64,000 nucleotides of DNA from Ascidiella aspersa (taxonomy: Eukaryota), in contig OZ004607.1 of the NCBI GenBank assembly GCA_963924565.1, forward strand, positions 9,176,001 through 9,240,000. Direction: 5' to 3'. How positions within the stretch are numbered: the stretch's first letter is position 1; each line of letters starts with the position of its first letter. Below, one piece after another: positions 36,459 to 64,000 of this stretch. The notes beneath the pieces were generated by a model, which did no database searches, was not told the DNA's origin, and saw nothing but the letters and a program-made list of their open reading frames with translations. The translations under genes were made by a program, and so were the position numbers.

Positions 36459-38722
36459 GTCAGAGGGGATTCCCCTTTATTGTTTGACAATGGCCTTACT
36501 TTAACTCGGTTTTGTTGCAGTCTTTAAGAGGTTACTTATCAAGTTTTTAATTTGTGTATTGCCAATCATTTAGAACTTGACAACGTTTATGTTTATGCGT
36601 CGCAAAATCATTGTTTTAAAATTAATTCCTAAAAGGTAGTTTGGGGTGTATAGGATATGATGGGGGGAAGGTATATGTAAAGCACTTTGTGTGCTCTTTC
36701 AAAGAGTTTGGAGCTCTCAGAGCGGATTCTTTGTGCAGAAATATCTAGGATTGAATCAAGCTTTGGTCTCATGTTTTCCGCGTTACCCGCGAACATGAAA
36801 TAGATTAACTTGTTTTTACAAGTTCGACAATGCCTAGCAGCAATCAATAGGTTATTACCTAATTTAAAATTGTATATTTGAACTAAAATGTTAGCACGTG
36901 TTCTATTTACAATTAAATTAAAATTATACAATATTTCGGTCTCGTCTGTCGTTTAAAGCTGCAGCATGCTGCTTTTACGAAAAGTTATGAATGTATGGAT
37001 GCACTTTAAGCTAAGAACAAGTAATATGTTTTAAACCTACTAAATACGTTTAAAGTTGAACCTGTTTGTTTCGACTTGTTTATGTAAACAACAGATTGTG
37101 TGAAACTGCGCAATAAGAAAGTAAAATCATTAATATATTGTTTGCTAAAGTTCTATTTTTTTTTTACTTTCACCATTTGGGCGATTTTATTTGTGTTATC
37201 TGTTTATTACGTCACTTTTATTGCTCCAACAACAAAAGCACACTACATTGTGCGTGTGTTTTATACTTTTACATATTGTACCTATATATGACTGTCTTAA
37301 TTCTCCGTAAACTTGATGTTTCGTATGAGACAAGATTTTCCAGAATTTCGTGCTAAACAAATCTTCGACGAAATTCCGAGCTTCGTAAACTATACTTTTG
37401 ATCACACAACGAAAGACAAACCGTTTGAGTAATGCTACAAACAAACCAGTGCTTGACAAGGCTCTTTAAAATACTATTTCGAGAGCCTGTGCTGTTACGC
37501 TTTTGGTGGAGGGCAAGCAAAACAACAACCCTGACCACTTGCGGTACCCGAGAGCACTTGCAAGGAGCGTCACTTAGCGCATGAGTGAACACGACGCGTT
37601 TAGCTTAGGAAGGAAGCTAATCTCCCGATTAGGTTGGACGCTGAGCGATTTGGCTGATGCTGTCTGAGTTTTACGGTGAGCAGCCTGGAGCGTTTAGCAC
37701 AGTTGTTTATTCGCTTGATAACTTTCAGGCGCGCATTTTAGGGTTTGTGCCTATTTTAGTGTTGTAAGAGTTTTGTACCAATTGCCTACAGTTTTTGGAG
37801 TAGTTTAGAGTGTTGTTATTATGGTTATTCATTGAGATTTAGTTTTGCGGTTTATTTGTTTGCAAACATCTTGCAATGTCATGATTATCAAAAACTGTTT
37901 TCTAATCAATAGACAAAGAACGCGCAAATCCAGGCTGTTTTTTTTTTTTCAAAAGTTTAAAAAAAGCTTTCCCAGAGCAGCTCTTCGAACGTTTGTAGGT
38001 TTAGCAAATCACGCTTCGTTTATTACGGCTGGATCGACTGGCCAATGTGCACAGCTACAATCGTATCCTGTGTTCAGCCATGCAATTCTAAGGCATTTTG
38101 GGCGTTTCGCTATCGCCCTGCTGCACGGTTTTGTTCTGTTTCCAGGATACGCTTATCGGCGCAAAGGTTTTGCTAAATTCTAGCGTTGTACAAATCGCAA
38201 AGCAGATACTCACGCTGCCACAGATTCGTTCGCTTTTAATAAGTTCCAGTACTTTAGGTTCATGTAACATTTTTAGAATACAGTTAGATTAAATCACTTT
38301 GTAAATTGAAATACTTTTTGTACATATATGTTGATGGTATTTTTTGCTTAATGCTACATTATCTTGTTAGGTCAAGTGGAGGTTTAGAACCGAATGCTTT
38401 CTTAGGCGTATTATTCGTCGATGCTTCTTATCTAAATTATTTAACGTTTATTTGTAAAACTACCTCTCTTTAACCACTAAAATAAAAACAGGGGAGTCTT
38501 CTTAATTAATCAGCCTATTTGTTATCGTTTTGTGTTAATCGTTTTCAGTTTACGACACTCAGATAGCCAGCTGTTTACCCATACTTATCAACTACATTGC
38601 ATACAGCAGTAATTAGCATACAAAGGCAGGCAAACTTAGTAAAACTTGCTGTAGAACGACGACTGGTTTTGTGTGGGTCGCCAGTTGCAACCGAAAAGGA
38701 CATGGGAAGCCATTAACGTGCC

Positions 38723-41700
38723 ATGGAATATCGAACGAAGCTCGACTCTATTGAGGAGGTATCAAGCCAACCGTCACCCGTCCATCGATCAAAGGTTAGT
38801 ACAAAGGCAAACATTTATACAGTTTTTCTTGTTGCAATTATCTATGCAAAAACTGTTTTGTTTTGCAATTTATAAGAGTGTTTTCGCGTTTTTTAGGTTT
38901 CAAAGAAAGACATTGTAGCCGTTTGTAGGTTTTAAATAACAAGACAATTTTGCTATTGAGCTAAATTTCGCTATCGTGTTAAATTAAGGTCATATAGACG
39001 CTATATAAAGCGCACACCGACAAGACAAAATCTTAAAGTAACTTGCCCAATTTAAGCGTCTTTTTCGCAATGTTCAGATTCACATGACATTTTACTACAA
39101 AATAACCTCCAGTACCATAACTTGTAATCTAAAGTAGCACACGGCGGTAGTAGTTATTCGTTAATAACTTTGCCTTTGTGCAAATGGTGCAACAAACTAT
39201 GTTTCATGGGCAACAGGTTTTTCATTTATAGAAGATACAAATTTCACATCTTAACCATCCGACGACATCTAAGCTCTTACAGTTTATAATTAATTAACAC
39301 CCCTGACTTCCTGTCACTTTGTAACTTTGTGCAAAGTAATTTCACGCGAGTCACGTCACTTTTTGCCTAAATTCGGCGCCCGCCCGAAATGTTCTAACCG
39401 TAGTTTCAAAACTTGTGTCGCTTTTTCCAGAACGATCGCGACCGCCTCAGTCGCGCCTATGACGTCATAAACCAGCATTTGAAAGCGCGTAAAAGCGTGG
39501 CCAAGCACGCAAAGTGGAAGTTTCTCTTCATCACTGTCTTCCTGGTCACACTGCAGCTCCTACAGGTAACAGTGCTTTCGTGTAGGCCGGGGTCACCAAA
39601 CTACGGCCCGCGGGTCACATTAAGCCCGCCGGGTTAAATAAACTGGCCCGCGTCACGTTTGGTTAATGAAGATGAAGTACAGTTAAAATGTTATCGCATG
39701 CAATTCCAAACTAATTGTTGGTGGCTTGTTAACTGTACGACAACTTAGTAAGGCTCTTGACAGTTTTTATTGCATAGATATTTATATTTTTTTATTGCGA
39801 TAACCAAGTTAATAAAGTTCGACAACAATATTTATATCCGCGATCGTAAACTCATCAGCTATCCGGCCCGCCTTATGGTCAGGCCTTAGTTAGAGTCATC
39901 CGACTCTTTTAAAAAATGTTCTCTCAACCAATGGGTCGCGTTTATTTTATTTTGTCTATGTTGATAAACCTAATGGTATTTGTTACAATAGCGAAGGCTT
40001 CAAATGCCTTAATTAACGCCACAAAGAGTTCTCATAGTGAAAACCTACAAGATGTGACAAACCACCATTTTTTTGCATTTTTATTACAGCCTTTGACCGT
40101 CTCTGAGTTTATTACGGTTTTGATCCTCGTAACCAGATGTTTTTTCACGGAAGTTTATATTTTAACGGCTTCATACTGTTTGCTGAATAAAATGAAAAAA
40201 GTCAGAGAACAGGTGAGATGTGCACCGTTTTAATCGAGATCGTGCATTTCTCTATTCAGCTCATTCTTCTCCACACGATTCACGTCACAAACTTCCTTTT
40301 CTCGTCGCTTTTCACAGCCTTTGCGGCGCTCACCATTGTCGTGAAGCTGTTCGAAGAGTGTTGGCCGCTGCGGAAGAACTACACCAGGGCAAAGAAAAGT
40401 GAGTTGCGGGCAAGAGATGGAACGATTCATTTTGCTTCTACCTATATATCAGTATCGGTAAATTTTGGCCCATATTTCGGCCGATATTTTACTACAAAAC
40501 TATGATATAGTTAGACGTAATAAGAATATCAAAGCCCATACAAAGTAGGTATCATTTTGAACGTTTCGAATAACTCTTTATTCATTTTCATCAGTTATTC
40601 GAAAACGTTCAAAATGATACCTACTTCTGTATGGGCTTTGATATTCTTATTACGTCTTACTACAACCTCGAAACCATTATGCTCCTATGATATAGTTGTT
40701 TCTACAAAACAAACAAATTTTCTATTTTGACGTTTCCAGGGCCAAGAAAAGTAAGTTGTGGACTAGAGATAGACCGATATATCAGTTTGCCTATAATATC
40801 GGGCGATATTTCGCTTCTAACCATATATCGGTAAATTTTTTTGACTACGAAAATATGACCCGTTAATCACACGTTCGGTGCCAATGCACTGCTTCATAAG
40901 TTAATGAGCATTGCGATCGTCATTGGGTAAATCATTGTCTTTTTTATGAAAAAAAATTAGTGTTTAAATGGCCATGTTTTAATGTATACGCCTGTCATCA
41001 AATCAGCTGTTATTTTGCGCCAACAGCAAAACAGCAAAACATCAAAGCAACAGCAAAACATCAACAGTTTTTTCGGAAGCTTTACTTGGTTGGTCGTAGC
41101 AACACGGTTTTCACAACGTACATTTTGGCGAACGACGGCTGTGCCTTTTTGTGGATCGCCCGTTACGCTAATAAACTAGTGTCCGTTAGGAAGTCCAGTA
41201 CCACGCTAAAACTATACACAATAGCGCGTATACAAGTTGGGCTATATCTTTTATAAGTTTGAAATTTTGTACTGGTATTCTACTGAAACGTCATACGCCA
41301 AGTTGCTATTTACCAGTAGATAGGCATTCCAGGCATTATGAATTCGTTTTTGTCAAACTCGTTTAAATGCACATGGCAAACCAAGCGTTTGTGTTAAAAA
41401 CATAATAAAGTGTTGAGAAGTATATCCTTGGTTACCATCTGCCAAGAAAGAAAAAATAAGCACGGAATGGTAACCCTAAGTATAGCTAATTGCCTTACTA
41501 CTTTTGCGTAATTACATGTGCTAGTCATGTTATCATGGTTGTTTTTCACAAAGTTTTTTCTGGTGAAAATTGGTCGCATATTGCCGTCATATTCAACGGG
41601 AACTTCCACCATCAGCGAAGATAACCTTTAAAAGGCGCAGTGTCATGCAACTGGACTGCCCATTTGCGTCACATTGTAAAGCTCTCGATCCACGATAGAG

Positions 41701-43252: not shown

Positions 43253-44980
43253 GCTTCTTCACAAGTTTGCGAAAACATTTTGCCTAATAGTTGACAGAAA
43301 GATGAAGTTGCAAGTCAATAGCAGACTTTGTCTTTTTTGCAGCGACCCTGGTTTTAACTCAAAAGAAGGGAATTTATTTCATGCTTCCAGTATGCCTTTA
43401 ATGCAGTTTGTTTTTCGTTCATAATATTTGAAAATTTTGATTAAATAATTGTTTCCCATTTAGGCGTTTTTAAAGAGGTTCTTCGGTTCAGTCACCGTTC
43501 ATTTTTATCAAATGTTAACAGCGGACTTTTGAACGGATTAAGTACCATAGTAACCCACTGTCCATCAATAGTCACCATACTAGACTAGACCGTATAGGTC
43601 TGGTAAATATAACAAAGTATAGTGCCATTCCTTATGTTTGCTAAAATGGCATCCAAATGTGGATTTTCTTTTCAAGCTGAAACTGGTCGATTTTGTAGCG
43701 TTTTCCTTGCTTAATCCCCCCTTTTACACGGCTCATTTAGCCCTAGGATCGATTGAAGTTTAAAGGGTTGCCGGGCGAACATGTGTAGAAATAAATGTTT
43801 TTATTTGTTAGCGTTGTCTTTTGCCTAACATGGGAAACTTTTTGCTTTGTATGTTGCTTTTTTGCTTGTTCATTGATTCATTTAATACACGATCGCGCTA
43901 ACCAGGAAATGGGTGTTTTAAATAAGTCAGATTTTTCTAAAACACAGGACAACATGTTTTAAAACAGATTAGTCCGTTTTGAACCATGAACATAATTAAA
44001 ACCTTGTCGGCCAAGGTTTTTTTTTGCAAAGTGTCTCTTAGAATGAATGACCGTATAACCATCATGGCTATACACAAGCATTGTTCAGTATGTGACGTTT
44101 GGTAGAATGTTGTATTTTATAAACGTAGTTGGTTTGTTCATTAACAAAAAATTTTTGTTTCACAAAAATCAGAAAATCTTTACAACTTTCTTTTGAAACG
44201 GCTCTTTAAAATAACTTGGCTCTTTTTGTAAATGGTTTATTTTGTCTGAGAAAGGCGCATGCGCTCCTGTTTGCGAAACTATAACTGAAAATTTGACCTG
44301 CATTGATGACGTTCGTCGAATATGACGTAACAATGTGCATCGACTGACCAAAACACTGCACGATTTGCGTTCGGCGAGCGGTCGATAAACAGTTGCGATC
44401 TAACTGAGTTTATGCTTGCCGAAAGGACACGACATTGTCTTAGATGAATGAGAAATTCGCACGTTTTGGGTCCTATTATAATTACACACAACCAAAGGCT
44501 GACATTTGGTTTTATTTGCGCTGTGTCATTCAAATAATTTTATTTGAAAGTAGCAGCCAAACAAGTTGCTTATATGTTTTGGTAGCAGGATTGTAAAGGA
44601 CAGTTTTTCGTAACTATATCTACGAATCTTACTCTGAAGTTTAGTCCGTTGTAATGGACTTAACCTGAGCTACAAAATATGATCTTCAACTCCGGATAGT
44701 TTTAACTTTAAACAGTGGTCTAGCGAAAGCGAGATATCAAGATGAAGATAAAAAGCTCTAGCTATTTGCTTTAGGCACTGTTTACTCTATATATTTTAAT
44801 TTTGATATCCTAACATGTGATCAACTGATCAGGATTTACCAACTTAATCAAAGACGAGAGTTACTGAGTTCTCGCATTGTTGATATGTTAAATTTTGACA
44901 AGGCTTGCTTAAAAATACAATTAACTTGCTCACGTTGAGTAACCAACGAATAGTTAAGCTGCCATATTCTACTACGTTCT

Positions 44981-47900
44981 ATGTCAAGACTAGCCTTTTC
45001 GAGAAAGAGTAGGCTTAACCCAGCTTCTGAAGACGATTCTCACGAAGCTAGTCCACTGCTTTCGAGTCAGTCGCAACCCTCGCTGGCCCGAGACCTCGAC
45101 AGCATATTGGTGGCCGGCGACGCCGAAGATTCACTTTTTGCCGATATGGATCCGGGTAAGTCATCACTTTTTTTGTTTTTGTACTTCGGAACGTTTGCAA
45201 ATGGTAAAATGACAGTTTATTTGCTGTTTTTTTGCGGTATTGCAAATGTTTGCCTTTTTGATATTTTTACGGAAGCTATTGAAACGTAGAACGATTTCAA
45301 GTAATGATAGATGTTTTAAATTCAAAATGACATTTGTCTGATTTTATGTTGGTAGAGAATTTCCTTACAATAGTACAATGATGACTTTACGTATTTTTAA
45401 TTCATTCATCTATAACATTATACCCCAAATTTCTAGGCGGTAGATTTGTGTTACGAGTGATAAAATCACACTGTTAGTTTTTTCTATAGTGATTTAACGT
45501 GGTTAGGTTTTAAACTTGTCCGTTCCTCGCAGACATTAATATGGAGGAGGGTCGGGCTTCAGATGCCTCAATCAGAAGCATGAGCAGTATGAGTAGCAAA
45601 AGCAGTAGGAGCCGAAAAAGTAGAAGAAGTGGCGGGAGCAGCAGTAGCAGCTCCAGTGGAAGCCCCCTCTCCGAAGAATTAGAATACAACAGAAGTAGCA
45701 GCAGCAGCAGTAGTATGAGCGGCAGTAGCCTTTCCGAAGAAGAAGACAGCCGTAGCAGCATTTCAGATGGTAAGTTCTACTGTATGATTTGTTTAAAAGC
45801 TTGGTTGGCAAACTCTAGCAAGAGAGCCGCAAGTTTTACGCGTCTCTCTTGTATTTTCGCATTTACATTGAACGGTATATTTTACCAATTTGCCAAAGTG
45901 ATTGGTTGTGGCGCGCGTCTATTCACATGCTATTACTTTTCTGCAGAATCAATTTTAAAGCTTTAACACCGTTTCACCCCAAAACGCTCAATGAGTAACA
46001 TCACATTTTTTTCTAGTTTTCACTTGCGTTAAATTAAAACATTTGTGGTCTAATTATATTACCTTGGTTCGCTTAATCTAAATAATTTTTTTATAACGAG
46101 CGATACTCATTATTACTAAGTATTACTAAGTACTCGTAACGCGAAGCACGCCTAATATATATAACGTTTCGATACCACTTCATTTATGTTTAACTTTTGA
46201 TAAGGTTCAAATATTACCTACGTCTATATTGGCCTTGGTATTTCTACTACTAACAAAATATAATTTCTATAAAATTGCAGTACTTTCCCGTGATTTAAAG
46301 AAGGGGGGCATCCATCACGAGATGGACCTCGCTCATATCGAGCATCACGACGATCATCTGCACTCTCTGCCCATCGAGGGACAACTGAGCGCCAAGAAAG
46401 TGGTCATGATCAAGAAACCGCCCTTCATTGAACGCCATATGGAGGTTGGTTGCCCAGATCGTACAGTTGAAATGTTTTTTTTGACCGAAAGATGTTATTT
46501 GCTGGTAGTTAAATACACTTTTGAGTTAAGTTACGCTTTTAGACTTTTGAAAATCTTTGTAATTAAAATATCGTTTTTCATTTGGTGACAGACCTGTACG
46601 CCAAAATGTCACCTTTGAATTAAACAGCGCTTTAACAGTTAATAAACTTTATAGAATTTGACCAAATGCTCTCGTTACTGAAAACCGATCATAAAAATCT
46701 ACCTTTTTCAGAAAAGAAGAACACATAAAGTGTTTCTGCTATGATGCAATATTCGCATGTGCAAACGAGCATAAATTTGTTGAATCCCAACTACCGTGCA
46801 CTTGTTTTTTACAATAAGTTTAGTTTCACCTCGTTTTTTTTGTATTAAACTTAAGCCCACTGCTATAAATAGACTTGCATTAAAAATAGTGATTTGCGAT
46901 ACATGACATTTTATTCCGATTCCCAATGTTTTTAGCAAAAAGTCCCTCGAAATGAAATAACGTCATTTATACGCTCAACTGAGCAAAAAAGGGGAACTTG
47001 AAACATTTATTTAGTGTTAAGAAGTTTAAAATCATGCCGAAAATTCCTACCACAATTTAGTATCGGATCGGCACCGATACAACCCTACTACAATCAGCTA
47101 CGATCCGATATTATCTGACATCCCTAATTATAAACTAGAGATAGACCGATTTATAGGTTCATTGATAATATCGGTCAATATTTGGCTTCTACTGATATAT
47201 CGGTATTGGTAATTGTAGGCCGATACTTTGGCCGATATTTCATTGCAAAAATATGATAACATTTTTCCTGTACAACTAACGACTTACCGATTGTTTGATT
47301 AAAAATATTGGGTTTTAGCATTACGATAAGTTAATATGCAAAATGATGTTTTAATAATTAATAAAAGTTTATAAACGCAAACGTTATTGGGATTTTATTT
47401 TCAATTAATTCAGGTTTTGAACATTTCCCAGGTACATGAAAAATCAGTATCGGTATCCGGTATCGGTTGACTAAATAGTAAAAAATCGTGTATCGGTATC
47501 GGCCAAAAGAGTGATAACGGTCGATCTCTATTATAAACTCAATCCAGGTTGACCCTACGAGTGCTTGCAACGACCGAGTGTTACTTGAAGAGCTGCGCAA
47601 TCGCTTCCATCGATCCTACAGAAGGTGGAAGCGTACGGCCAAGTTCTTCGAGGCCGCCAACCTCCTCGTTACCGTCATGCTCGTTTGTTTCCAGGTCGCC
47701 CAGGTAAGAGATTCGAAAGAGGTTTGATTAACTTAGTGAGCGATTATTATTATTTTTTTAATTTTAGGGAAATAAAAATTTGCAAAAAAAAAACTTCGTA
47801 CTCGGATGTCCGTTGATTTATTGATATTATTTTTTTACTTATTTTGCTCATTTTTCTCTCTATTTACTATCGTCTATTTTCTTTGTTGTGAAAAGTTATA

Positions 47901-49350
47901 TATATATAACTCTTTTTTAAATAGTTTTCTTGTTGTGAGTTTTCCTTGTCTTTTTCTCTATATTTCTAATTTTCTTATCTATTCCTATTCTCTACCACTC
48001 CATTCTCTCTCATTACTATTTTTTACAATTGGTTGTTTTAAATTATAAGATGAGAATCCCCCAATTGATTTTTTATACGTCCAATTCGTCGCACGTCATA
48101 AAAAATTTGCACATAAGCACAAAAGTCCATCTGTTTTGTTTTCAGGTTTAACTGATTTAAATTTAATGGCCGTGCCAAGAGAGTCTCAACTTTTATTTTT
48201 TATGTTGATATGTTTTTCTAAACTCAGCTGAAAACTGCTTTCAAACGCAACATTTTTTTTTGAGCGAACCAAACTAAGCACTGAACTTAAAATATAATAA
48301 TCAATTTGGTTGTATCTAAAAAATAAATACTCCTATGAAAAGAATCATGAGATTTTAATTCATCGAAGTCCTACCTTGGAATAGTTTTTTAGTTAAAGTA
48401 TATTTATTTATAGGTTATTATATTTCAACTTCCCGAAATCAGTCCCAAGACGAAGCAGATTGTAGCGACGATCCTTTCGGCTATGACTGCTTCTATTCTC
48501 GCCCTTCAACTTAAGTTGGGCTGGGCCGACAAGGCTGCTAAGAGCGAGCGAAGTGAGTGTTTTAATGGGCTATTCGTACCTGTAGCGACCGTAGAAATAA
48601 CTGTTATTGATTTATTTTAAATGATTTTTTGCCATCCCTCAAGAAGCGTATTTGTATTTTAGAGAATATGATTAGGATTTTAACGTGCAAATATTTAAAA
48701 TGCCAAATCAGTTATACCCCACAAAGCACCTTAATTAATTAAAGTATTGTAGTGGTCCGAAATTACTAGTTGACCAACAAATATTTTTTCCTGCATAAGT
48801 CGGCGAACGTATAAAAAGCACTAAGGGGCGATCAACTGATCCGAAATTGTGCGCGGGTCAAAGTTTTACAAAAATAACGTTAAACTGACAAAAAATTATA
48901 TTCTAATTTTTTTCCAAAAAAACAAAAAAAAATTTAATAAAAACTCGCGTTTTAATCGAAAAATTGTTTTCACGATTATAATCAAGCATGCTTCTGTTTT
49001 TAAATTGTGATAGGCAGTCAAAATGCTGTGTGCCGACAATCATACAGCTAGATATTGGGACGATTCGCGTAATCGCAAACGCCTCACACGTTTTTTCGCA
49101 GAAATTTCCCATTTTTTGCCAAAAACCAACAAAACTGAATAAAACTAAAAGCGACAAGACGCTTGTTAGCCGGAAATTAACTTTCTGTCACGTTTCAGGC
49201 GCCCTACTTTGCGGCAAGCTTCTGCATCACGCCGAGTACCGCATCAGCGTGTTACAGGCAGGCGGGCATCTGCACGACGTCGTCAAGCTGTGGAATGTTT
49301 CTCTGCAAATCGAGACCAAGGATATCCCTCCTTTCCTCATACCCTACTGA
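44981..49350 (+). CDS. Two-TM protein, SLATT/DUF4231-like family, paralogue B (340 aa, long Ser-rich/His-rich N-terminal extension)
   Basis: Exons 44981-45155, 45533-45769, 46281-46444, 47548-47703 (156 nt), 48414-48552 (139 nt), 49199-49350 (152 nt) splice in frame (1023 nt). Core: KKPPFIERHME-VDPTSACNDRVLLEELRNRFHRSYRRWKRTAKFFEAANLLVTVMLVCFQVAQ-VIIFQLPEISPKTKQIVATILSAMTASILALQLKLGWADKAAKSERS-ALLCGKLLHHAEYRISVLQAGGHLHDVVKLWNVSLQIETKDIPPFLIPY*. Confidence 0.85.
47136..47530. mobile_element. hAT (Ac-like TAG..AT terminus) MITE
   Basis: TIR tagagatagaccg/cggtcgatctcta; perfect 8-bp TSD ttataaac; subterminal atcgg/ccgat repeats. A partial copy starts at ~40763. Confidence 0.88.
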
Positions 49351-51629: not shown

Positions 51630-53640
51630 ATGGCGGCCGACACAACACCCCAACGTAAGTTATAAATTCGTATCTACTTAAAAAACAGTAAGTGTGCGAG
51701 TTAAATATTTTTCTCTGCCCTTTCTTGATCTCTGCCCTTTCTTACAGAAAACAATGTAGAGCCTACAAAATGTGTCGAAGCACCTGGCAATGGTGACCCG
51801 AAAAAGAAGCAACCCCCTTTTTGGGAAAGGGAAGTCAAGGTGAGATGTTTTTTCGCTTTAATCAGGGTCCTTAATTAATAACATAGCAGCCAACCGCTCG
51901 TAATTCTTTTAGAAATTATGCATATCGTGGTTTCCAACATCTAGGTGTGCTATTTAAACAGCACTTTATTTATTAATTTATAAAATTTCAGTAAGAACAT
52001 TGATCTAAACCAGTGGTTGTCAACCGGGGTACCGCGGCACCCTAGGGTGCCATTTATAATGCTCAAGGTGTAAGATTAGAGTGAAATGAATTCAATTTTA
52101 ACTTCCTATGTTGTGCAGAGTTGATATGTGTTGTTTCAGTTCCGTTTATTGTGACATACATTCCAGTGAATTACCTACGCAAAACTCTTGTAGGGGTGCC
52201 GCAATATATTTATTATATCTGAGAGATGCCGCAAGCCATAAAGGGTTGAGAACCACTGATCTAAACTAAAAAGCGTGAATCGTTTTTTGCCTGTAATTCT
52301 TGACGATAACGCGCTAAATTTTTACACAATTCTTTACGCAGATCGAAAATGCGAAAGACGTTGACGCGGAAGGTTTGCTGACCGAAATGTACGGCAAATA
52401 CATCGGAGAGTTTAGGCGTTGGAAGCGCAAGGCCAAGGTTTTTAAGTGTACCAACATGCTAGTCACGTTGCTAATCGTAGCAATGCAAGTAGCGCAGGTA
52501 AATACTATCAGGTTTCATCAGAAATTAGCCTACTTCTACAATGTTTTTAATGTTTTCTTCTAAGTTAACTTAGTTTAACAAAGTTTAAAATTGCAGTCAA
52601 ATTCAACGGCGTAACTGTTTAAACAACGTAAATACAGTATAAAACAGCAGCAGAATTGGACAGCAAGCGGTGATACTAAAAATGCGCATATCTTGATCAA
52701 TAAATTTGAAATTTTTGTCGTGATTGCCATTATTCGTGCAAGAGACGTTGCTATACGTTAGCCAGAATTTGAATTTGGCAAATTTCCACGAAAAATTATG
52801 ATATAACCTTTTCGGGGCCATTGTACTCTAGTAAATGGCGTTTCAATAACGCCTCGGTACGTTATTTGAAAACAAAATGATAATGATTTAATCGATGAAT
52901 TCTCAGAAGGTTTTTAACCCGGTATTGAATTTTCACTTGATACTTTAAGGTTATCTTGTTCCAAATCCCCGAACTGGATATGGAAAAGAAAGCAGCTTTG
53001 GCCACAATCCTTCCAACTGTAACTGGCGCCGTTCTTGCTATTCAGTTGAAGCTAGGTTGGGCTGAAAAATCTGTCAAGTCCAAAAAGAGTAAGTGACCTC
53101 ACTCTTCGTCTTTTTAGTTTGGCTTAAAATTAGAATTACCTACTTAACGAAAAATAGAGTTTGACTTAAAATATGAACAGTTAATCAATTGAAGGTAATT
53201 TACAGTCGATTTTGAGGAAATCGAAATTCCCTCTTAGTACTAAATTGGTAACTATCATCCTTAAATTCCAAGTCTGCTTGGTACCTTATTTGCCATTGGA
53301 GCGTTTTGTAAACAGGCCCTATTATTAAGCATTTAAAGTAGCATCGGTAGGAAAGGTACTACCAAAACCAGTCATGTTATAGGTTAATTTTAGAAATAAA
53401 CACTTGGTTTTATTCCTGCCATGTAGTTGGGGCCATTACATTATTCATAAGGGTAAAACAGCTAACTTTTTTACATTTCTTCTTGAAGGTGCCAGACTGT
53501 ACCACAAACTTGCAAAACATACCGAATACCGCCTGAGCGTTATGAAGGCTGGCGGTGAAGTGTCGGACTCGATCAAAGTTTGGAATGCCGCCCTTAAGGC
53601 TGAGGCAACCGAGATACCACCTTTTCTTGTGGCTTACTGA
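51630..53640 (+). CDS. Two-TM protein, SLATT/DUF4231-like family, paralogue C (187 aa)
   Basis: Exons 51630-51654, 51748-51839, 52342-52497 (156), 52950-53088 (139), 53489-53640 (152). Core: KKKQPPFWEREVK-IENAKDVDAEGLLTEMYGKYIGEFRRWKRKAKVFKCTNMLVTLLIVAMQVAQ-VILFQIPELDMEKKAALATILPTVTGAVLAIQLKLGWAEKSVKSKKS-ARLYHKLAKHTEYRLSVMKAGGEVSDSIKVWNAALKAEATEIPPFLVAY*. Confidence 0.88.
52011..52258. mobile_element. hAT-type MITE
   Basis: TIR cagtggttgtcaacc/ggttgagaaccactg; perfect 8-bp TSD atctaaac. Confidence 0.88.
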
Positions 53641-54346: not shown

Positions 54347-55076
54347 CCCTATACAACTACTGATATTTAAGCGGTATTCCCTTTACATTTTAACACAGTT
54401 ATTGCAATTTGGAAGAATTATTTACATTCTACTAAACGTTTGCTGAAGCAAATGTCACGGTAGAAAAAAGTATTTTAAAACTAATCATCAAAACCAGAAT
54501 AAGGAGAAGCATCATATTTGTCCTTGTTGCGAAATGTATTCTTGGTCGATTGTAACTAGTTCTGAAAAAAAAACAGCAGAAGGTTGTTTACGCAGCTCTG
54601 TTGTTTTCGCCCCTGGCACAATGTTTTTATGTAAATCGTAACAGTCTAATTTGTTTGCGTTACAGCAGGGCATTAAACACTTAATGTAACTGTTTCAGAT
54701 TATAACATAAAGTGTTCCGACTTAAAAACACTTGTTTTTGTCTGAACGACACGAAACACACAAAAAACTCCTCGCAGACCAGTTGGTGTCCCGTGGAGCA
54801 GTTTTATCCGCTAATAAAAGGTCTTCATTCCCAAGCAGACAAAAAACAGCTAATAAAAGGATCGACTAATCATTAAAAAAATATACAAGTTGTCCCCACG
54901 TAATTTTGTTGAGGTACACTTTGCACGGATCTGGAATGCAGCTTAATAAGGAATGTCAATGTCATCAAAACGTCTTTATCAAGATGATGACAATTTACTT
55001 GACATTCAGTATTAAGCAAATTTTGTTTAGTTTGTGAATCACCAATCCATCGGATTTATAGCGAAAAATTACTTAC

Positions 55077-55235
55077 CCATGCATGAGGGCCGTTGAGTTT
55101 TCCACAAGACCGGCACTTTTGCCACAAGTTCGCCCAGCTACTTCTACTTTTCCAGCTTCTACCACAATTGCACCGATAAAACACGTAACGGCTTTGTCTT
55201 TCTTTTCGGGAAGCTTTACGATTTTGTCGATCCAT
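55077..55235 (-). pseudogene. Diverged duplicate of the ZCCHC24-like zf-3CxxC micro-gene (exon 1 intact; cognate exon 2 not recognisable): truncated gene or pseudogene
   Basis: 159-nt ATG-to-donor (gtaagt) exon, same length as the neighbour's exon 1: MDRQNRKASRKERQSRYVFYRCNCGRSWKSRSSWANLWQKCRSCGKLNGPHAW (26/53 identical by eye). Downstream acceptors near 54810/54850 give short frames lacking HPQHLCEKC. Confidence 0.6.
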
Positions 55236-56201
55236 TTTTTATCAAATTTTCATAATAAACAGAGAGTCGAACTATTTTTTAGATTCTGAAAGTAATGGTT
55301 TACTTGATAAACCCCTCATCTAAGAGGCTATCCCTTACCCCACTCTATCCACCACGTGCTGATAGTTTCTCTAACAAAAGGTACAATTGGTGCCAGTACA
55401 CAAATCGTGGAAAAGTGACAAGTCCCAGTCAATTCATTTGTGAAATAGTCCAAGTGGTGTCTTTTAAAAAAAAAAGCAAGTCTCAGTCCATCAGTTGCCA
55501 AAGCCAATGTCCAGTCAAGTAATTATTAGAGCAAGTCAACTTCTAGCCATTTAAATTAGTAAACTCGTCCGATTATTATGAGCAAACTAATTCAACTAAA
55601 ACATAACAAAAACCCAGCATATCGCAAGCTAATTGTTTTACGTGCAAAAATGAAGATAAATATCACAATTTTATAATACAGTGTTAATTGTAACCAAAGT
55701 CATTTGCAAAATCAAGTCATTCGAAAACAGTGACTTAAGTGCACTTAATTCAAGTCGCTATACTGATTAATACTGGTGGGTACTAGCAACAGCGCCAAAC
55801 CAAAAGTTGAATAAAGGCACATTTGACGTGCAATTGCTGTGATGTCTGCATGCCGAACAATTAAAACTTTTAGGGGGGTGACTTAAGCGTTTACTAAAGT
55901 GGATAAATTGGAGTTGAAATATAGTCTCGAACTAAACTGAATCCATTGAGTTTGTTAATTTCCTTTAACGTTTATTGTTGTAAGAAAAAAGCAATACAAA
56001 AAAGACGCAACTCACGAAAAGGAATTAAATACAAGTCTATAACATTACATACCTACTTTTAAACAAATATTGTGCCTTTTTTTAAAAAAAGAAAGAAATC
56101 AGAAAGTATCATATCGCAGCTAATCTTATAGCTGACTATTTTTGAAAGCTATAAAAAGTTGGTTAGGGTAATAACATATACAGTTTTCGTAAGCGTTTCA
56201 T

Positions 56202-56290
56202 TAATATGTATATAACTTAATTTATAAGTTTGTCAGTGTACTACCCCTAATATGTATATAACTTAATTTATAAGTTTGTCAGTGTACTAC
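56202..56290. repeat. 43-bp direct duplication (period 46)
   Basis: taatatgtatataacttaatttataagtttgtcagtgtactac at 56202-56244 and 56248-56290. Confidence 0.85.
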
Positions 56291-56459
56291 TGTTATATGT
56301 ATTAGAACTGCTGGATTTGCAGATTATATTTTTCAATTTTTTAAAACAACAAAACAACATCAAATATATGCAATAGCTGGTCTATAGATTCTACGAGAGG
56401 GTTACATTCATACGAAAAAAGGGTCCAATCTAAATATTTGAAGAAAGTTTTCTGGCGCG

Positions 56460-57439
<980 letters not shown>

Positions 57440-59706
57440 TTACAAAAGTCTGTTCTAATGACACCAGTTTCGGTCAATTGCATACCACGATGGATTTTAA
57501 TTGGCACTGTACCGCTTACCAACCGAAAACCGATTATAATTTACCCAAGTTAAAAACATTTTAAGTCGAGTTATTGCTGTATTGAGATCTTTCTATGAGT
57601 TTCCAATGAATAATAATGTAACTACGACTGACAGAAATTATCATAGGCAACAAAAAAGTTTTTTAGTTTGCTTTGTTTTATTGTATAACGCTGTAAATAC
57701 CGTTGTTGCCATGTCATGGTAAGATGAATGAGCGAAAGTGCTATAAAACCTCATAACATGAAACTAAATCTAGCCCATGGGTGACTTAGCTGCACACAGA
57801 AAGACCTGTCAATAAACGGCTTTCGCCTTTTGAAATGATGTTTTTCCCGAACGATCAGAATCAATTATTAGCTACAGACTAGTAGGCGAATTACTTACGT
57901 GTTTTTCTGACGCGCATCATCGTAGGCGTTACACAGTACGTAACTTCCTTAGATTGTTCAGGTCGTCATTGTTGAGATGTCAAAAAGGTAAAATAAATTC
58001 ACCTGGACTTTGCCGACAACTCTAAGGCCACTTTTAATTTAAACGCCATTTTTGTAAACGATCTTTGGCGCTACTAGTTACTCTGGTCAAGCAACATTCA
58101 AACTAATAAAAAAAACTTGAGTTTCGATTCTTTACGCTGGGAATGGTGTAAGCTGTGCTGTACGACATACCAACCTTCAGCAAAACAACCAAAGTTGAAC
58201 TGTTGTTTTTTCAAACGCGAAACCTTAGTTTCGTTGGCCATTCAAGTCACGTGATGAACGCTGCCGTCTGCGGTGTTTTTTAAATTCCACACAATACACA
58301 CAAATTACACCACCAATATGACGTGAGCGGACAGCGGAGAGTGCAACTAAACACGTAGTTTGTACAATATTATTGACTTGTTTGTTTTGACAAATTTATT
58401 TAGCGAATCCCGTTGTGTATATGTATTATTATGTCTAATCACAACTCAACTGTTTAAATATGTTATCTTTTAATGCAACAATTTTTGCGTTTCTGCTTGC
58501 TTGGACGCGGTCCGTCCATTTAGCGGCTTAAAAACTTTACAATTTAGGTTGTCATGTAATGGGAAGGTACAGGTTTTTTTTATTAAGCCAATACAAAGTA
58601 CCGTGGGTTGTTTTATTTCAACAACAGTTGACAAGCCAAATGTAAATCAAGCGTATTGTACATAATAGCTGCCTATGCCAGCCACGGCTGTACCATGTTT
58701 TGACACACCTCATACTGTAAATCATACGAAGGTAGAGTAGCATGGTTTGGTGGAAAGTTTGCCATCCAGGCATTGTGGGTTCATTTAGTTATATGACAAC
58801 CCAACAAGTTTACTGTATTTCAATCCCCTGAGAGTAATTATTTTTATATTGGTTATTTACTTTACATCTATTTGGTTATGTATTTATACTAATGATCCTA
58901 TGTAAAAATTGACTCGATTTTAAAGGCCGGGGTCGTAGCCCTTGTCGGTATCATTGCGGCTTTAAACTTGTTTTGACTTCATTTTCGATAAAATGCATTC
59001 CGGTAATGCATTTAGATGAGGTAAAACTTATAGATGATTACCAACCTAATAGAAAACTAACCAAAAGACGAAAAACGGCAAATTTTACTACGAATACTTC
59101 GATGATTCTTTTCCGCATACATTTGTCCTATTAAACCTGTGTGGGTTTGCTGTAATGATTTTATTTTGCAGTTCAAACATAAATGTGGAGATTACATAGT
59201 AAACCCATGATATTTTCTCACGTACTCTGCTGTTGTTTACCATTGAGCAGTTGCCTGTTTGCCGTTTCCGTATTGCCTTGCTTTTATTTCGTTCGGAGCA
59301 TTTAGACCGACTTCGCAGACTTTGATACAAATTACAATCGTTTTCGATCGATGTTTTTTTTTTTACTTTTTTTAATACACGGTTATCGGCAAGTGGCAGG
59401 TGTGAGCTGTATAACTTTTTTAAATTACAATCAAATTGGTAAAAGGAAGGACTTAAACAAAAACAATTTTTCGGCTACAGGGCCTGTAAAATAACCTTGT
59501 TATTGTGAACAGTTTTATTAATAAAAAGTATTTGTAGCCAAGCCCCTTTCATCACAGAGGTACTTTCTGCATGTTCATGAGATGAGAAAAAGCCTTAACA
59601 CTACTGAGTTATTTAAGTTAATAGGTAAGTTTCGACGCTTATGAAATGCACGTTCAAAGGGGCTCTCCATAGTAACGTGATTTCCTTTACCCAGGAGACC
59701 AGCAAT

Positions 59707-62700
59707 ATGCAATATACCCAGGAGACCTTCACCGACAAAGCCTACAAGAATAAAGCCGGAAAAATCGGGTCAACGATTTGGGGTCGTCAGTGCAAGGTAA
59801 AATATGCAAGTTCCCTATTTTGTACGTTTACGTAATACGGATAGCCTTTCAATTTTTGTCCAAATTGAAAAAATCACACAGAACTTACAATTGAAATTAC
59901 TTCGTTGGTCCACTTCACATATATTTTTTCAGCACTTGATTAATTAGCTTCTACATATATTTTTAACTTACTTTGCATTTGTACGTCATTGTATCTAAAG
60001 AAAAATAAAGAGAGGGCTTGCTTTATTAAAGCTTTTTTTGCCTTTGAAGACTAGCAACGTTAACCAAAATTAAACACATGTAAATACGTATTTTGTTATA
60101 TTGCGGGTAACTCATTTACTACGGCAAAAGTGTCAATGACCTACAAAAACACTTCGATGTCCAGATTTAACATTTGTTAGCTCAAAATCATCGTTACATT
60201 CCGAGTTAGTTTAATCGCAATTTTTACTTTTGACAACCATTTTAAATTTTGAAAATTTTACAACCACAACTGGATATTAATCATACTTTCGTCAATAATT
60301 CAATTACCCAAAATATTTCCTTAACCTAAATTTCGAATATTGGTAAAGAAAGTAGTAGTAGTCACGGCTTTATAATGTTATTGGCAAGCCGTTCTTTGTA
60401 TTCCTTTTGTAAATCTTTTGAATCCTTCTATCTTGGTGAAAGAGCAGCTGTTATCAGATGATCAAGCAAATTGAAAAAATAAATGAAACAAAACCAAAGC
60501 CTGCAAAGCTTACGTGGCGATCACTAATGGCTACCAAAGCAAATGCAATTTGTTCAGCTTGAAATATTCTTGGTATGCCTAAAATTTATTGGATTTTTTT
60601 TTTATATATCTTAGATCCCTAACTCAAAGGACATTGATGCTGAAAGCCTGCTACGCCAAATGCACTCTCAAGCAAAGGAGTCCTTCAAATACTGGACTCG
60701 TAAGGCTTCCAAGTTTAAGGGCTCGCACATTGCATTCATTATTGCCATCCTGTTACTACAACTCGCCCAGGTTGTTATTACTAATGCTAAAACGAGTCAA
60801 GCAACTCGGCAATTATTTGCCAAGTACTGGTTTAACTGTGTGCCATTTTAGGGTATAACCCATACGAGTAAATGTCGCAAGAACTCGAACGAGTCAATTT
60901 AATAAACTCGTAGAGTACTCACTCACGTACAGATTTATTTTGAATTTGGTGATTCTTTGCTTACAGCAATTTTTAATAGAAAATGTCATGTAAAGCAGGG
61001 GTCGGCAAACTTTTTGGCCCTGCGGACCGGTTTGAAACTTAAAATTTTCCGCGGACCGGCTTTAAAAAACAACAAATGTTCAGTAAAGGTAGTTGATTAA
61101 AACATTTTTTCAATGGACTAATTAAAATGCATACGCTTGTGTCTAACACTTTCCTGCCTGAACATCAAAATAATAAATCGTTTTTCAATGCATCTCATAT
61201 GGTCACAGCACACTGGTTTGTTTTGAACCTCACGAGTGCTTAATACTAATTGCGATTTTTTATCAAACTAATCAACCATGGAGTATGCTTAAACGAAAGT
61301 TAATATGTTTTGAATAGAAAACTACATTTAAATGATTTTGACTTATTTCTTAGCATTTTGCGTACGGTTTGGGTTTGAATCAAAATTTTAATCTGGCAAC
61401 CCTGCTACGGACCGGTAACGAACTCCTCGCCGCGGACCGGTGGTTGCCGACCACTGATGTAAAGTACGAAGGCCATTGACAAGTTATTACAGTTTATGGG
61501 GCTTTCCATTTTGTATGATTTTGTAATTGATTACTTCGTTTCCAACAACAGAAACATGTGGCCATGTTAGAGCGCACAAATATATATACAACAATTATTT
61601 TGCTAGAAATAAAAAAAAAATTAAAATTATGAACTACAAAAATATATCTAAAATCAAGATCTTAACAGAAAACCGTTCCTGCATTCCATAAAACTCTTAC
61701 GAGAAAATACCAAATGTATATAGCATAGTAGAGTGGCCGGCAAACCGTTTGCCGCAGAGCCATTTTAGTGGGCCGCTAGTTAGCCTATTCTTGAATAGCT
61801 TAGTGTTATCATGTAGTGGTGGGTTAGCCGTACATTCATTGCACTTTATTTTAAAAGTTCGTGTGGCTAAGTTTTTTCATGTTGTCTCAGCGTGGTTCAG
61901 ACCGCCGTGCCAAATGTGGTCCTGAGAGCCTGTCGAACTATATTTTTTGCCAACTTTAACTATATGTCAACGCAAACTTTTAACTACATATATACACAAA
62001 GGTTTTACGTCGTGGGCCTTCAATAGCTGTGAAAAGTAAGCTTTGGGCCGCGACAAAAAAGTTTGTCGAACACTGGTATAGTACTTTTTTTGCTTAGATA
62101 CGCATTTAATGAAGTTGTGATTCTTTTAGGTGATTGTCTTTCAACTGCAAACTATTTCCGGCTCTGTCAAATCCGCTCTGGCGGTTATCATACCCTCGCT
62201 TACAGCTGCCGTGTTGACCATGCTACACAAGCTAAACTGGCTTTCTAAAGCGACAAAGAGCAAGCGGTGTAAGTATACCACAGAGACAATATGTGGAATC
62301 GGAAATCGATGTCTTATAATTTGTAGCGAAAAAAAAAAAATATATATATATATATATATTAAATGTATATAAATATTTTTTTTTCGCAATTCATTAAACC
62401 AGTACTCAGACAGGGAGTCGAACCGTTTGACTTTTCTGGTTGAGATTCGGTTCGGGTTGAAGATTTTTTTTTCGGGATCCAGTCTAGTTCGGTTTCGGTT
62501 CGGAGCAAATTAAACGTTCCGTTTCATCTCCGGCTGGACTAAATTTATTTTCAAAACTGGTTTATAGAGTTCAATATAAGTTGCGTTTAAGGTAAAAATG
62601 TGGTCCAATAAATGTAGAGAATAATTATTAAATTATAACGCGTATTTATTTTAAGTTTCGTGACGTATTAGGTAACGGCAGCTTATTTTTGAAATATCTA

Positions 62701-63964
62701 AAAAATAAAAAATACACGTTTTATTTAATCAGTATTCATTTTTTTCCATAAAAGTTCGAACATGGCATAACTTGACTCGGTATGCTGAAGTGAACCATTT
62801 TTTGACAGGTTAGGGTTCAGGTTATTTCAAAATATTTAGCTCCTTAAAATTTTAGGGTTCAGGTTCGGAAAACATTGGCCCCAAACCGGTTCATAAAGTT
62901 CCTATTCCGGTTCGGTTCGACTTCATGTCCTCAAACATTTTTTTGTTCGACACCTTTGAAAAAGTTTTTTTAACTTGCGACGCGTTCAACAATAGAAACT
63001 TGCTATTTTGTAATTTTTTTCAGCCGTTTGTTTCTGAAAATCATAAACAACTGCTGTTTTTTTTCTAACCACAAGTCACATGTCGGAGATAAAACACATG
63101 TTGGAGATAATGGAAACTGTAAGCACTTTATTACCGCGAATCATTTTATATACGAAACGTAACCATTATGCGACGCCCGAAAATTTTCTTTTAAGAACCT
63201 CTGCGTTAGGGCTTTAATTTTCCTTGTACTTCGATAACCTATGCAAAAGACAAACCAGGGCTGCGGAGTCGGACTCGGGACTCGAGGAGTCGGTTTGTTT
63301 TCCTGGAGTTGGACTCGGGACTCGAGTAAGACCACGTAAAACTGAGTCCCGAGTCCGACGTGCGCATGTGCAGTACCAAATTTTTAAACTGATATGACCG
63401 CCAACTGGAAACTGTAAAGGTGGAATAGCATATGGGCATATGGTGGGATATTTTCCAACCATGTGTTGTGAGTGAATGAAATATACGACACCCCTATAAG
63501 TGGATTGCTGAATCTCCGCGTTATTTTAGTTACGTAAATTGGCGGAGTACAGGCTGTATAGTCATGACCGGACTCGGGACTCGACGAAATCGACTCTGCA
63601 GCCCTGAGACAAACAACTGTTTTTTTTTCGACTTATTAGGCTAAAAGCATTCACTTTTTTTGTTTCAGCGAAGGGAGATTACCATAAAACGAATGCCAGT
63701 TTTTAAAACTAGACTTTTTGGTTTAGAATGTGTGCTTTATCCCTGATAGTTCTCCAGTGGCCAGCCCATAGCTTGTGAAACCACAATATTTATACATATG
63801 TATTTTTAACAGGTGCCGCCTTCTTCGACAAGATTGCCAAGCACACCGGATACCGCCTGAAATTAATGGAGTTTGGTGGCGAGGTTACCGACTCGGTCAA
63901 AATTTGGAATGCAGCCTTATTGGGGGAGGCAACTGAAATCCCACCCTTTCTCATGAGCTATTGA
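59707..63964 (+). CDS. Two-TM protein, SLATT/DUF4231-like family, paralogue D (178 aa)
   Basis: Exons 59707-59796, 60615-60770 (156), 62130-62268 (139), 63813-63964 (152): MQYTQETFTDKAYKNKAGKIGSTIWGRQCK-IPNSKDIDAESLLRQMHSQAKESFKYWTRKASKFKGSHIAFIIAILLLQLAQ-VIVFQLQTISGSVKSALAVIIPSLTAAVLTMLHKLNWLSKATKSKRC-AAFFDKIAKHTGYRLKLMEFGGEVTDSVKIWNAALLGEATEIPPFLMSY*. Last exon 32/49 identical to paralogue C by eye. Confidence 0.87.
60996..61456. mobile_element. hAT-type MITE
   Basis: TIR caggggtcggcaa/ttgccgaccactg; perfect 8-bp TSD atgtaaag; gcggaccgg subterminal repeats. Confidence 0.88.
63256..63606. mobile_element. hAT-type MITE, 'cagggctgcggagtc' family
   Basis: TIR cagggctgcggagtcg/cgactctgcagccctg; perfect 8-bp TSD agacaaac; ggactcgggactcg subterminal repeats. 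Confidence 0.9.
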
Positions 63965-64000
63965 GTTATTGGCTTTTTTTTCTGCACGTTGTCAAAAATC

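Follow-up and report, generated by a model that had tools for sequence, protein, structure and literature searches.

Nested genes favour long introns and lack a strong bias in orientation in mouse and human (PMC11694760), while in human genes, retention of introns lying upstream of a nested gene that runs in the same direction has been documented (Kaer et al. 2011, PMC3192792). A preliminary description of the locus studied here took same-strand nested genes to be uncommon, a premise which, given the lack of a strong orientation bias in mouse and human (PMC11694760), is weaker than it was put there. The gene in question is CEP290, which in amphioxus spans 39.7 kb, with introns all below 2.3 kb and no gene called inside. 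We analysed a stretch of 64,000 nucleotides of Ascidiella aspersa (the window), in which the CEP290 coding sequence appears to break off before a series of smaller genes. Our results indicate that CEP290 is very probably whole and that its intron 21 acts as the host of nested, independent genes which would be skipped by splicing.

Results

CEP290 resumes beyond the window

Exon 21 is bordered by the acceptor ttttcag and the donor ...ctcaagcag/gtcag, and its translation runs to ...KFEVSSALKQ; the exon end reported earlier, at 36458 with the donor cag/gtcag, was thus confirmed in the sequence. An RNA contig (X3 record 16) unites positions 34692-34828, 35598-35746 and 36297-36462, its last piece reaching 4 nt past the donor. 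By joining exons 19, 20 and 21, this contig shows that exon 21 is real, as are its neighbours, and that they are spliced. The earlier figures of 1047 aa up to this point and of 20 introns below 1.7 kb appear consistent with the homologue coordinates and with gaps of at most 3 kb between the matched blocks. The features of the locus are summarized in Table 1.

Table 1 Features of the CEP290 locus. Positions are those of the window unless a contig or locus is named.
Feature	Position	Strand	Remarks
CEP290 exon 19	34690-34830	+	tblastn to CEP290 homologues; spliced piece 34692-34828 in X3 record 16
CEP290 exon 20	35598-35749	+	X3 record 16 (piece 35598-35746); tblastn; open frame ending ...KAETLQ
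CEP290 exon 21	36300-36458	+	53 aa, both ends in phase 0; final CEP290 exon inside the window
CEP290 intron 21	36459 to C1:9251429 (75429 in continued numbering); window part 36459-64000	+	38,971 bp
Read-through stretch past the exon 21 donor	36459-37431	+	Unspliced; in-frame stop at 36525-36527
2TM gene 1, first exon	38005-38794	+	5' UTR, ATG at 38723, 24 codons, donor aag/gttagt
2TM gene 1, TM1 exon	39431-39565	+	45 aa, both ends in phase 0; X3 record 21
2TM gene 1, TM2 exon	40260-40400 (3' end approximate)	+	LILLHTIHVT...
2TM gene 2	45541-49350	+	tblastn between paralogues, motif scan, alignment A1; upstream exons predicted
2TM gene 2, parts	KKPPFIERHMEV exon ~46130-46450; TM1 47548-47703; TM2 ~48414-48557; C-terminal ~49192-49347	+	Ser-rich N-terminal frame; stop after the C-terminal exon
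2TM gene 3	51747-53640	+	At least one additional 5' exon, unplaced
2TM gene 3, parts	exon ending KKKQPPFWEREVK 51747-51839; TM1 52342-52497; TM2 ~52950-53093; C-terminal ~53476-53637	+	Stop after the C-terminal exon
3CxxC zinc-ribbon locus	55059-55238	-	Zn_ribbon_3CxxC_2, E 0.011, 16.2 bits, under cut-off
3CxxC zinc-ribbon gene	57119-57439	-	Open frame of 107 aa; PF17180 match
2TM gene 4	60615-63964	+	TM1 60615-60770; TM2 ~62130-62273; C-terminal ~63800-63961, then stop
2TM gene 5	Beyond the window, inside intron 21	+	Clear paralogue
CEP290 exon 22	C1:9251430-9251564 (L005:1430-1564)	+	Acceptor ctacag/GTCACC, opening VTVLEMKELNERQRAEH...; downstream DNA

All searches for CEP290 and the 2TM genes were run exon by exon. 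The absence of a CEP290 exon from 36459-64000, as described before, was borne out by tblastn with 21 full-length homologues (word size 2, E up to 10), which detected no CEP290-like sequence in 36459-75429. As the best E-value in this range was 0.49, on the wrong strand and within the noise, a CEP290 exon missed within the window was rejected. The claim that CEP290 stops mid-protein did not hold: it is the window edge that produces the apparent truncation, and exon 22 was found 11.4 kb beyond it. This exon, which had been expected to resemble VTVLEMKELNERQRAEH, is located on the same strand at C1:9251430, corresponding to 75430 when the window numbering is continued past 64000, and follows a phase-0 acceptor. 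Its frame (75400-75570 in continued numbering) contains ctacag/GTCACC, codes for VTVLEMKELNERQRAEHANRMYNKLK... and ends at the donor cag/gtttct. The acceptor is in the matching phase, the exon is devoid of a start codon context of its own, and exon 23 follows at L005:2405.

The CEP290 proteins of amphioxus (Branchiostoma lanceolatum, XP_066265930.1, P0005), lamprey (Lethenteron reissneri, XP_061435038.1, P0016) and coelacanth (Latimeria, H3A222, P0183), which comprise 2468-2474 aa, aligned collinearly in tblastn between 21.7 kb and the stop codon at 105 kb, i.e. from residue ~160 to the final residue of each protein, with a likeness of ~46-49% over the recognised exons. Exon 20 ends at homologue residue 996/1001/1000 and exon 22 starts at 1057/1060/1062, with the 53 aa of exon 21 in between. 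Across intron 21 the homologue numbering is accordingly continuous apart from a poorly conserved linker of 5-8 residues, for which a micro-exon is conceivable. Every recognised downstream exon is open, and the other gaps between CEP290 blocks are either at most 3 kb or contain further coiled-coil frames.

The downstream half also resembles CEP290 orthologues in its CEP209_CC5 domain, in its conserved C-terminal ...FFDEIEDLKYNY... exon and in being single-copy. CEP209_CC5 (PF16574) gave three exon-wise matches (36.8-39.2 bits against a cut-off of 25) at C1:9257251-9258815 on the plus strand, the strand of exon 21, 45 kb downstream of its donor. A second CEP290 copy was rejected, as a whole-genome profile search with PF16574 returned matches at the CEP290 locus alone. 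The C-terminal exon (L008:749-1021), a conserved exon followed by a stop codon, matched the C-termini of CEP290 proteins from the representative library, with E-values down to 1e-33, 28 proteins being found at E<=1e-10. Judged from its sequence, CEP290 is one complete single-copy gene of ~87 kb, extending from window position 17630 to C1:9281024.

Intron 21 contains seven loci

Intron 21 is more than ten times as long as any other intron of CEP290, the others measuring about 3 kb at most. It contains five same-strand 2TM genes and two opposite-strand 3CxxC zinc-ribbon loci, all exons of which fall within 38005-72438 (continued numbering), between the end of exon 21 at 36458 and the start of exon 22 at 75430. 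We recovered the four same-strand 2TM genes previously noted in the window (TM1 exons at 39431, 47548, 52342 and 60615) as well as the two opposite-strand zinc-finger loci, which are minus-strand zinc-ribbons at 55059-55238 and 57119-57439. The earlier proposal of a gene cluster within one CEP290 intron is hence supported, with an intron of 38,971 bp, a following exon 22 and one extra 2TM gene past the window. Among the intron's larger unexplained frames, a Pfam search found no match, of SMODS or SLOG type or otherwise.

Since an intron exceeding the others more than tenfold is unusual for CEP290, an assembly error might have inserted an unrelated cluster or enlarged intron 21; an assembly join at 36.5-38.5 kb had indeed been suggested. 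This is contradicted by two other DNA runs, whose DNA-like contigs together cover 35999-39649 (X1, 36265-39649; X2, 35999-39621) and cross the boundary of exon 21 and the intron as well as the first 3.2 kb of the latter. The contigs carry their own SNPs and indels relative to the assembly and therefore represent other haplotypes. In addition, the two halves of CEP290 enclose the cluster in matching orientation and order, on a 41-Mb contig free of N, and pairwise identity among the nested paralogues is only 38-42% (alignment A1), which identifies them as old local duplicates and not as collapsed or duplicated assembly copies. We regard an assembly error as extremely improbable.

For gene 1, RNA contigs provide the junctions 38794>39431 and 39565>40260. 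X3 record 19 covers 38005-38792 plus 30 further letters at depth 29, and X3 record 21 covers 39429-39565 at depth 123, with a loose end after 39565 that forms the start of the next exon. The letters of this loose end code for LILLHTIHVT, were located in the frame 40191-40502 and are unique in the genome. With an RNA contig that begins at ~38005, its own ATG and a depth of 29-123 versus 6.4 for CEP290, the nested gene 1 possesses a start of transcription and a start codon of its own and reaches a depth ~20x that of CEP290 in one RNA run. The TM1 exon of gene 1 is 22% identical to those of genes 2-5, and a search of 39.6-45 kb with profiles of the TM2 and C-terminal exons of the paralogues found nothing; kinship of gene 1 to genes 2-5 is therefore unproven. 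Gene 1 is divergent, and genes 2-5 are four clear paralogues.

Five of the six genome copies of this small 2TM family are situated in intron 21. The sole copy outside, on contig C8 (L010), has the same exons, separated by introns of 1.1-2.0 kb, and shares its exon structure with gene 3. A retrocopy providing the 2TM protein free of introns was rejected, since the C8 copy has introns and so offers no single whole-protein frame.

The 2TM proteins share the plan of the SLATT/DUF4231 group (PF18181, PF18183, PF18142, PF14015), in which a basic amphipathic stretch precedes a pair of TM helices lying close to each other. This plan was read by eye from alignment A1 and the TM2 exons as RRWKRKAKVFK plus a hydrophobic 20-mer, and then ...ATILPxVTGAVLAIQLKLGW. 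A language-model feature search placed the TM1 exon near the SLATT_1, SLATT_2, SLATT_fungal and DUF4231 clusters (scores 0.88-0.93), with which it has 179-204 of 256 features in common. Unlike SLATT/DUF4231 members, the 2TM genes are without a SMODS or SLOG partner recognised by Pfam among the larger frames of the intron and without a Pfam match for any exon: exon-wise hmmscan against Pfam gave no SLATT/DUF4231 match up to E 10, a weak negative as the domain would span two exons, and no match to any other family for single 2TM exons. A word search with the alignment of the six TM1 exons yielded 30 candidates, none of them significant; as candidates were limited to proteins of ~29-91 aa, this negative carries little weight. 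Similarly, an atlas search with the C-terminal 2TM exon gave no usable match (best score 0.79).

The zinc-ribbon frame at 57119-57439 resembles PF17180 proteins in its nearly full-length match to Zn_ribbon_3CxxC_2 (51.9 bits against a cut-off of 27, E 8e-14) and differs from them in that the frames found here are short and stand alone; two more copies of it occur on contig C3. The 3CxxC zinc ribbon is a kind of domain also found in ZAR1 and in RTP proteins. At 55059-55238, the wider match to the neighbouring copy obtained in a genome search includes one TGA and one TAA, and this locus is possibly decayed.

Unspliced RNA at the exon 21 donor

The frame read past the exon 21 donor codes for VRGDSPLLFDNGLTLTRFCCSL and then meets a stop codon. 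RNA from this region is present: X3 record 17 covers 36433-37431 at depth 8.7, compared to 6.4 for the CEP290 exons, so that read-through in this sample is as deep as the exons and not negligible. Stranded X4 reads extend to ~36650, at a depth of ~1-2x that is too thin for a junction listing. The only canonical signal in 36459-38100 is one ATTAAA at 36912.

X3 record 16 ends at 36462, and the GTCA following the donor is common to the intron (gtcaG) and exon 22 (GTCAC). If spliced and unspliced forms coexist, a k=31 graph must therefore branch at 36462. The end of record 16 as branch point and record 17 as the unspliced branch are indirectly a sign of splicing between exons 21 and 22; a polymorphism at 36463 could alternatively cause the contig to end. 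Based on homology and this indirect RNA sign, the phase-0 donor at 36458 would be spliced to the phase-0 acceptor at C1:9251430, skipping the cluster, and the letters ...TCGGCTCTCAAGCAG would then precede C1:9251430 in the RNA.

The unspliced RNA could also be taken to mean that CEP290 is naturally split, its main product consisting of the N-terminal 1047 aa and a read-through tail of 22 aa, and the downstream exons being a separate gene or unused. In line with this, record 17 is unspliced at exon-like depth, the X4 reads extend to ~36650, and five same-strand genes, each presumably with a poly(A) site, separate the two halves. Against it, the downstream half is intact, single-copy, collinear and open on the same strand through the conserved C-terminal exon and its stop; the acceptor of exon 22 is in the right phase, and the exon is without a start context; the X3 contig breaks exactly at the branch expected for 21-22 splicing; and the ATTAAA at 36912 stands alone. 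As the main state of the gene, a split or truncated CEP290, which had been considered earlier, is contradicted by this downstream half and in our view very unlikely.

Phase 0, pointed out before for donor 36458 and acceptor 39431 alike, was seen in the sequence. It would allow the 2TM exons to serve as alternative 3' parts of CEP290, forming in-frame chimeras from 36458 to 39431 or 47548. In X3, moreover, plus-strand transcription runs unbroken between exon 21 and gene 1, and the depth of 123 at the 39431 exon exceeds that of the upstream paths seen (29 + 9), which leaves room for more upstream partners. The observed partner of 39431, however, is the gene 1 exon with its own ATG, and CEP290, at a depth of 6.4, could account for only a small part of the 123. 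Further, the 39431 exon opens with AACG, whereas the contig runs 4 nt (GTCA) past the donor; a chimera with this exon would branch at 36458, not at 36462. We give such chimeras, none of which was observed, little credence.

Returning to an intact CEP290 with a host intron, the nested genes would use their own promoters, as was seen for one of them, gene 1 (ATG 38723, exon 1 to 39431). Some host transcription would remain unspliced at exon 21 and continue into the intron toward gene 1, and this failed splicing would correspond to the known interference by a same-direction nested gene. The read-through matches the effect reported for same-direction nested genes in human genes. It could also give rise to a minor truncated product ending in ...ALKQVRGDSPLLFDNGLTLTRFCCSL; that such a minor CEP290 isoform is made is conceivable, albeit doubtful.

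Discussion

Our analysis removes a false lead, as it supports neither a split or truncation of CEP290 as main state nor a misassembly. Instead, it provides an example of a conserved ciliary gene in which one intron has grown to 39 kb and houses nearly a whole small gene family on the host strand. Expression of gene 1 is strong and independent, and just upstream of it some host RNA is left unspliced. The locus could be used for studying how a host gene is read through several same-strand genes. A more far-reaching scenario would be that the strongly expressed gene 1, starting 0.8-1.5 kb past exon 21, switches CEP290 between full length and a ~1070-aa product by read-through and intronic termination, and that the 2TM genes are animal members of the SLATT/DUF4231 membrane-effector superfamily, with nearly all of the family in this genome located in this one intron. 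Taken together, this combination is speculative and rather improbable.

Amphioxus CEP290 lacks an intron where intron 21 lies here, its exon borders being at residues ~1034 and ~1086. The host/nested arrangement as such is ordinary, and the phenomenon is already well described in other animals. In common with known host/nested pairs (PMC11694760; PMC3192792), the nested genes are contained entirely in the host's longest intron, gene 1 has a promoter of its own, and unspliced host RNA occurs at the exon just upstream of a same-direction gene. Unlike in the known pairs, the nested units come for the most part from a single small family that duplicated in place (four paralogues and the divergent 2TM gene), and because of this in-place duplication, there are five same-strand genes that the host polymerase has to pass.

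CEP290 continues downstream of the window

Exon 21 of CEP290 was found at 36300-36458 as described before, with the acceptor ttttcag/, the donor ...ctcaagcag/gtcag and a translation reading ...SSKFEVSSALKQ; the read-through frame behind it reaches a stop after 22 codons. The window (G000:C1:9176001-9240000, plus strand) contains no N. In a whole-genome search with the profile CEP209_CC5 (PF16574), three exon-wise matches passed the cut-off. They all lie at C1:9257251-9258815 on the plus strand, 17 kb past the window end; no match occurred elsewhere in the genome. In the downstream DNA examined (C1:9240001-9290000, L004-L008, window numbering extended past 64000), plus-strand coiled-coil frames start again at about 75.4 kb and continue to the final CEP290 exon. 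The sequence that the preliminary description had predicted as the continuation of CEP290 is located outside the window, in the frame 75400-75570. Here, exon 22 follows the acceptor ...tttaaactacag/, begins with GTCACC, codes for VTVLEMKELNERQRAEHANRMYNKLKSSLDEVQSRNDELETKFSQ and ends at the donor cag/gtttct. Its start at C1:9251430 therefore sets intron 21 at 36459-75429 (38,971 bp).

Full-length CEP290 proteins were pulled from a representative library with the last exon as query (by source name those of Branchiostoma, Lethenteron, Erpetoichthys and Ciona), and additional homologues by a word search with amphioxus CEP290 residues 900-1300. In tblastn against the window and downstream DNA, these gave collinear matches (21.7 kb to the stop codon), and stops in some HSPs fall where alignments overrun into introns. 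Exon 20 ends at residues 996, 1001 and 1000, and exon 22 starts at residues 1057, 1060 and 1062, of amphioxus (P0005), lamprey (P0016) and coelacanth (P0183) CEP290, respectively. As exon 21 contributes 53 residues, this leaves unaligned just 5-8 residues, from a linker of low conservation. When 21 long homologues were compared with intron 21 alone in a relaxed tblastn, no CEP290-like exon came up (best E 0.49). All other gaps between CEP290-like blocks are at most 3 kb, bar one of 6.3 kb that contains three more coiled-coil frames, so that no other CEP290 intron reaches a tenth of the length of intron 21. The tBLASTn comparison suggested earlier hence places the rest of CEP290 collinearly on C1, and exons running through to the stop codon reject a split or truncated CEP290 as the main state. 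The apparent truncation is a product of the window edge; a minor truncated or chimeric isoform may also occur.

Features of the CEP290 locus and of the 2TM family (window numbering, carried on past 64000, unless a contig or locus is named)
Feature	Position	Strand	Remarks
CEP290 exon 22	C1:9251430-9251564 = L005:1430-1564	+	135 nt; both ends in phase 0
CEP290 exon 23	L005:2405-2542	+	next exon after exon 22
Last CEP290 exon	104749-105021	+	contains ...FFDEIEDLKYNYTEAVKRNVLYEDQL..., then stop
2TM gene 1, exon 1	~38005 (possibly ~37250 in X4) to 38794	+	ATG 38723, 24 codons
2TM gene 1, exon 2 (TM1)	39431-39565	+	X3 RNA
2TM gene 1, TM2 exon	starts 40260	+	X3 loose end behind 39565 codes LILLHTIHVT
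2TM gene 2, TM1 exon	starts 47548	+	paralogue comparison
2TM gene 3, TM1 exon	starts 52342	+	paralogue comparison
2TM gene 4, TM1 exon	starts 60615	+	paralogue comparison
2TM gene 5, TM1 exon	starts 70328	+	paralogue comparison
2TM copy on C8	L010:4506-9487 = G000:C8:24775505-24780486	-	sole paralogue outside the CEP290 intron
Zn_ribbon_3CxxC_2 frame	57119-57439	-	clear match, 51.9 bits
Zn_ribbon_3CxxC_2 copy	55059-55238	-	weaker, possibly decayed

Sequencing reads at the exon 21 boundary

Reads from four runs (X1-X4) were examined over 33650-39649. X1 and X2 are DNA-like, with even depth over this region. A single X1 contig spans 36265-39649 and a single X2 contig 35999-39621; since both cross the boundary with SNPs of their own relative to the assembly, there is no misjoin at 36.5-38.5 kb, and an assembly join at this place, also considered previously, is rejected. 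X2 carries an 87-letter insertion at 36265; 8 letters that the assembly lacks (TTTTTATT) follow 35791 in X1 and X2 alike, and the two indel sites are intronic.

X3 is RNA-like, with zero depth in CEP290 introns 18-20. Its assembled contig (record) 16 (1855 nt, depth 6.4) splices 34692-34828, 35598-35746 and 36297-36462, thus ending 4 letters past the exon 21 donor. These letters, GTCA, are common to intron 21 (gtcaG) and exon 22 (GTCAC), so that a k=31 graph must branch at 36462 if both forms exist. Record 17 is the unspliced branch (36433-37431, depth 8.7) and overlaps record 16 by 30 letters, as expected. From the end of record 16 at this branch point we infer the exon 21>22 junction. In X4, a stranded RNA run with a depth of merely 1-2, all first mates over the CEP290 exons and 37250-39649 lie on the minus strand, indicating plus-strand RNA.

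The segment 33850-34450 (intron 18) is a very high-copy repeat, probably a short mobile element family, with a summed contig depth of 1e5 in the DNA runs (flanks ~50-100), dozens of joints and loose ends, and X4 RNA reads on both strands. Repeated sequence also occurs at 35050-35249 (intron 19) and 35850-36049 (intron 20), where depth is 1,400-4,500 over the two stretches vs ~50-100.

Genes nested in intron 21

The four same-strand 2TM genes noticed in the window were recovered, with a fifth beyond it. For gene 1, X3 record 19 comprises 38005-38792 plus 30 extra letters and record 21 begins at 39429; as the last letters of exon 1 are AAAG and those of the intron CCAG, with AG in common, the junction was placed at 38794>39431. 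X3 depth is 29-123 over gene 1 vs 6.4 for CEP290. Genes 2-5 have three core exons of similar size in common, namely TM1 (52 aa), TM2 (~48 aa) and a C-terminal exon closing with ...EIPPFLVAY-stop, with pairwise identities of 38-42% (TM1) and 50-65% (C-terminal exon). An upstream exon ending KKKQPPFW/LEREVK is common to genes 3 and 5. At the corresponding position gene 2 has KKPPFIERHMEV, 3' of a serine-rich open frame (45541-45760, plus strand, first residues MEEGRASDASIRSMSSMSSKSSRSRKSRR...) that is possibly its N-terminal exon and has no Pfam match. A short element, probably a repeat fragment, occurs at 40440-40502 (3' of the gene 1 TM2 exon; ...SVSVNFGPYFGRYF...) and 47179-47253 (5' of the gene 2 TM1 exon; ...SVLVIVGRYFGRYF...), 60% identical in translation.

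Genome-wide, the family comprises genes 2-5, one copy on contig C8 and the divergent gene 1; no further copies were found. With gene 3 the C8 copy shares 71-82% identity and all four exons, the ...KKKQPPFWEREIK exon among them, but its introns are longer (1.1-2.0 kb). It is a duplicate made at the DNA level fairly recently and no retrocopy. Exon-by-exon searches matched no Pfam family, nor did the TM1 alignment find relatives when used as query in a word search. In a language-model feature search the TM1 exon adjoins SLATT/DUF4231 clusters (scores 0.88-0.93), a lead only to a possible relationship.

Both opposite-strand zinc-finger loci were likewise present, one as a clear and one as a weaker match; two additional copies lie on contig C3. 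Between the two loci is a perfect 46-bp tandem repeat (56202-56290, 1.9 copies). Upstream of CEP290, C-type lectin domain exons occur on the minus strand at 5269-5745 and 10270-10545 (Lectin_C, Pfam, E 5e-6 each); together with comparable frames at 5-14.5 kb, they point to either a multi-CTLD gene or a tandem set.

Comparison with other host genes

With exon 22 lying beyond the nested genes, the preliminary description's gene cluster within one CEP290 intron is borne out, and the locus is an ordinary host/nested arrangement. Branchiostoma lanceolatum CEP290, in contrast, spans 39.7 kb with every intron below 2.3 kb and no other genes called inside, and its exon borders around the break fall close to residues 1034 and 1086 instead of 1056. 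Amphioxus thus lacks both the long intron and the genes that it carries. In the amphioxus locus (L009:23813-25148), a piece coding for CEP290 residues 1369-1392 is repeated about nine times, mostly with a 115-bp period, directly 5' of the exon actually used, a pattern resembling a tandem array of exon-like copies within an intron. Nested genes in the same direction have been reported to lead to intron retention and cryptic polyadenylation at the upstream host exon (PMC3192792), and the read-through RNA behind exon 21 resembles this effect.
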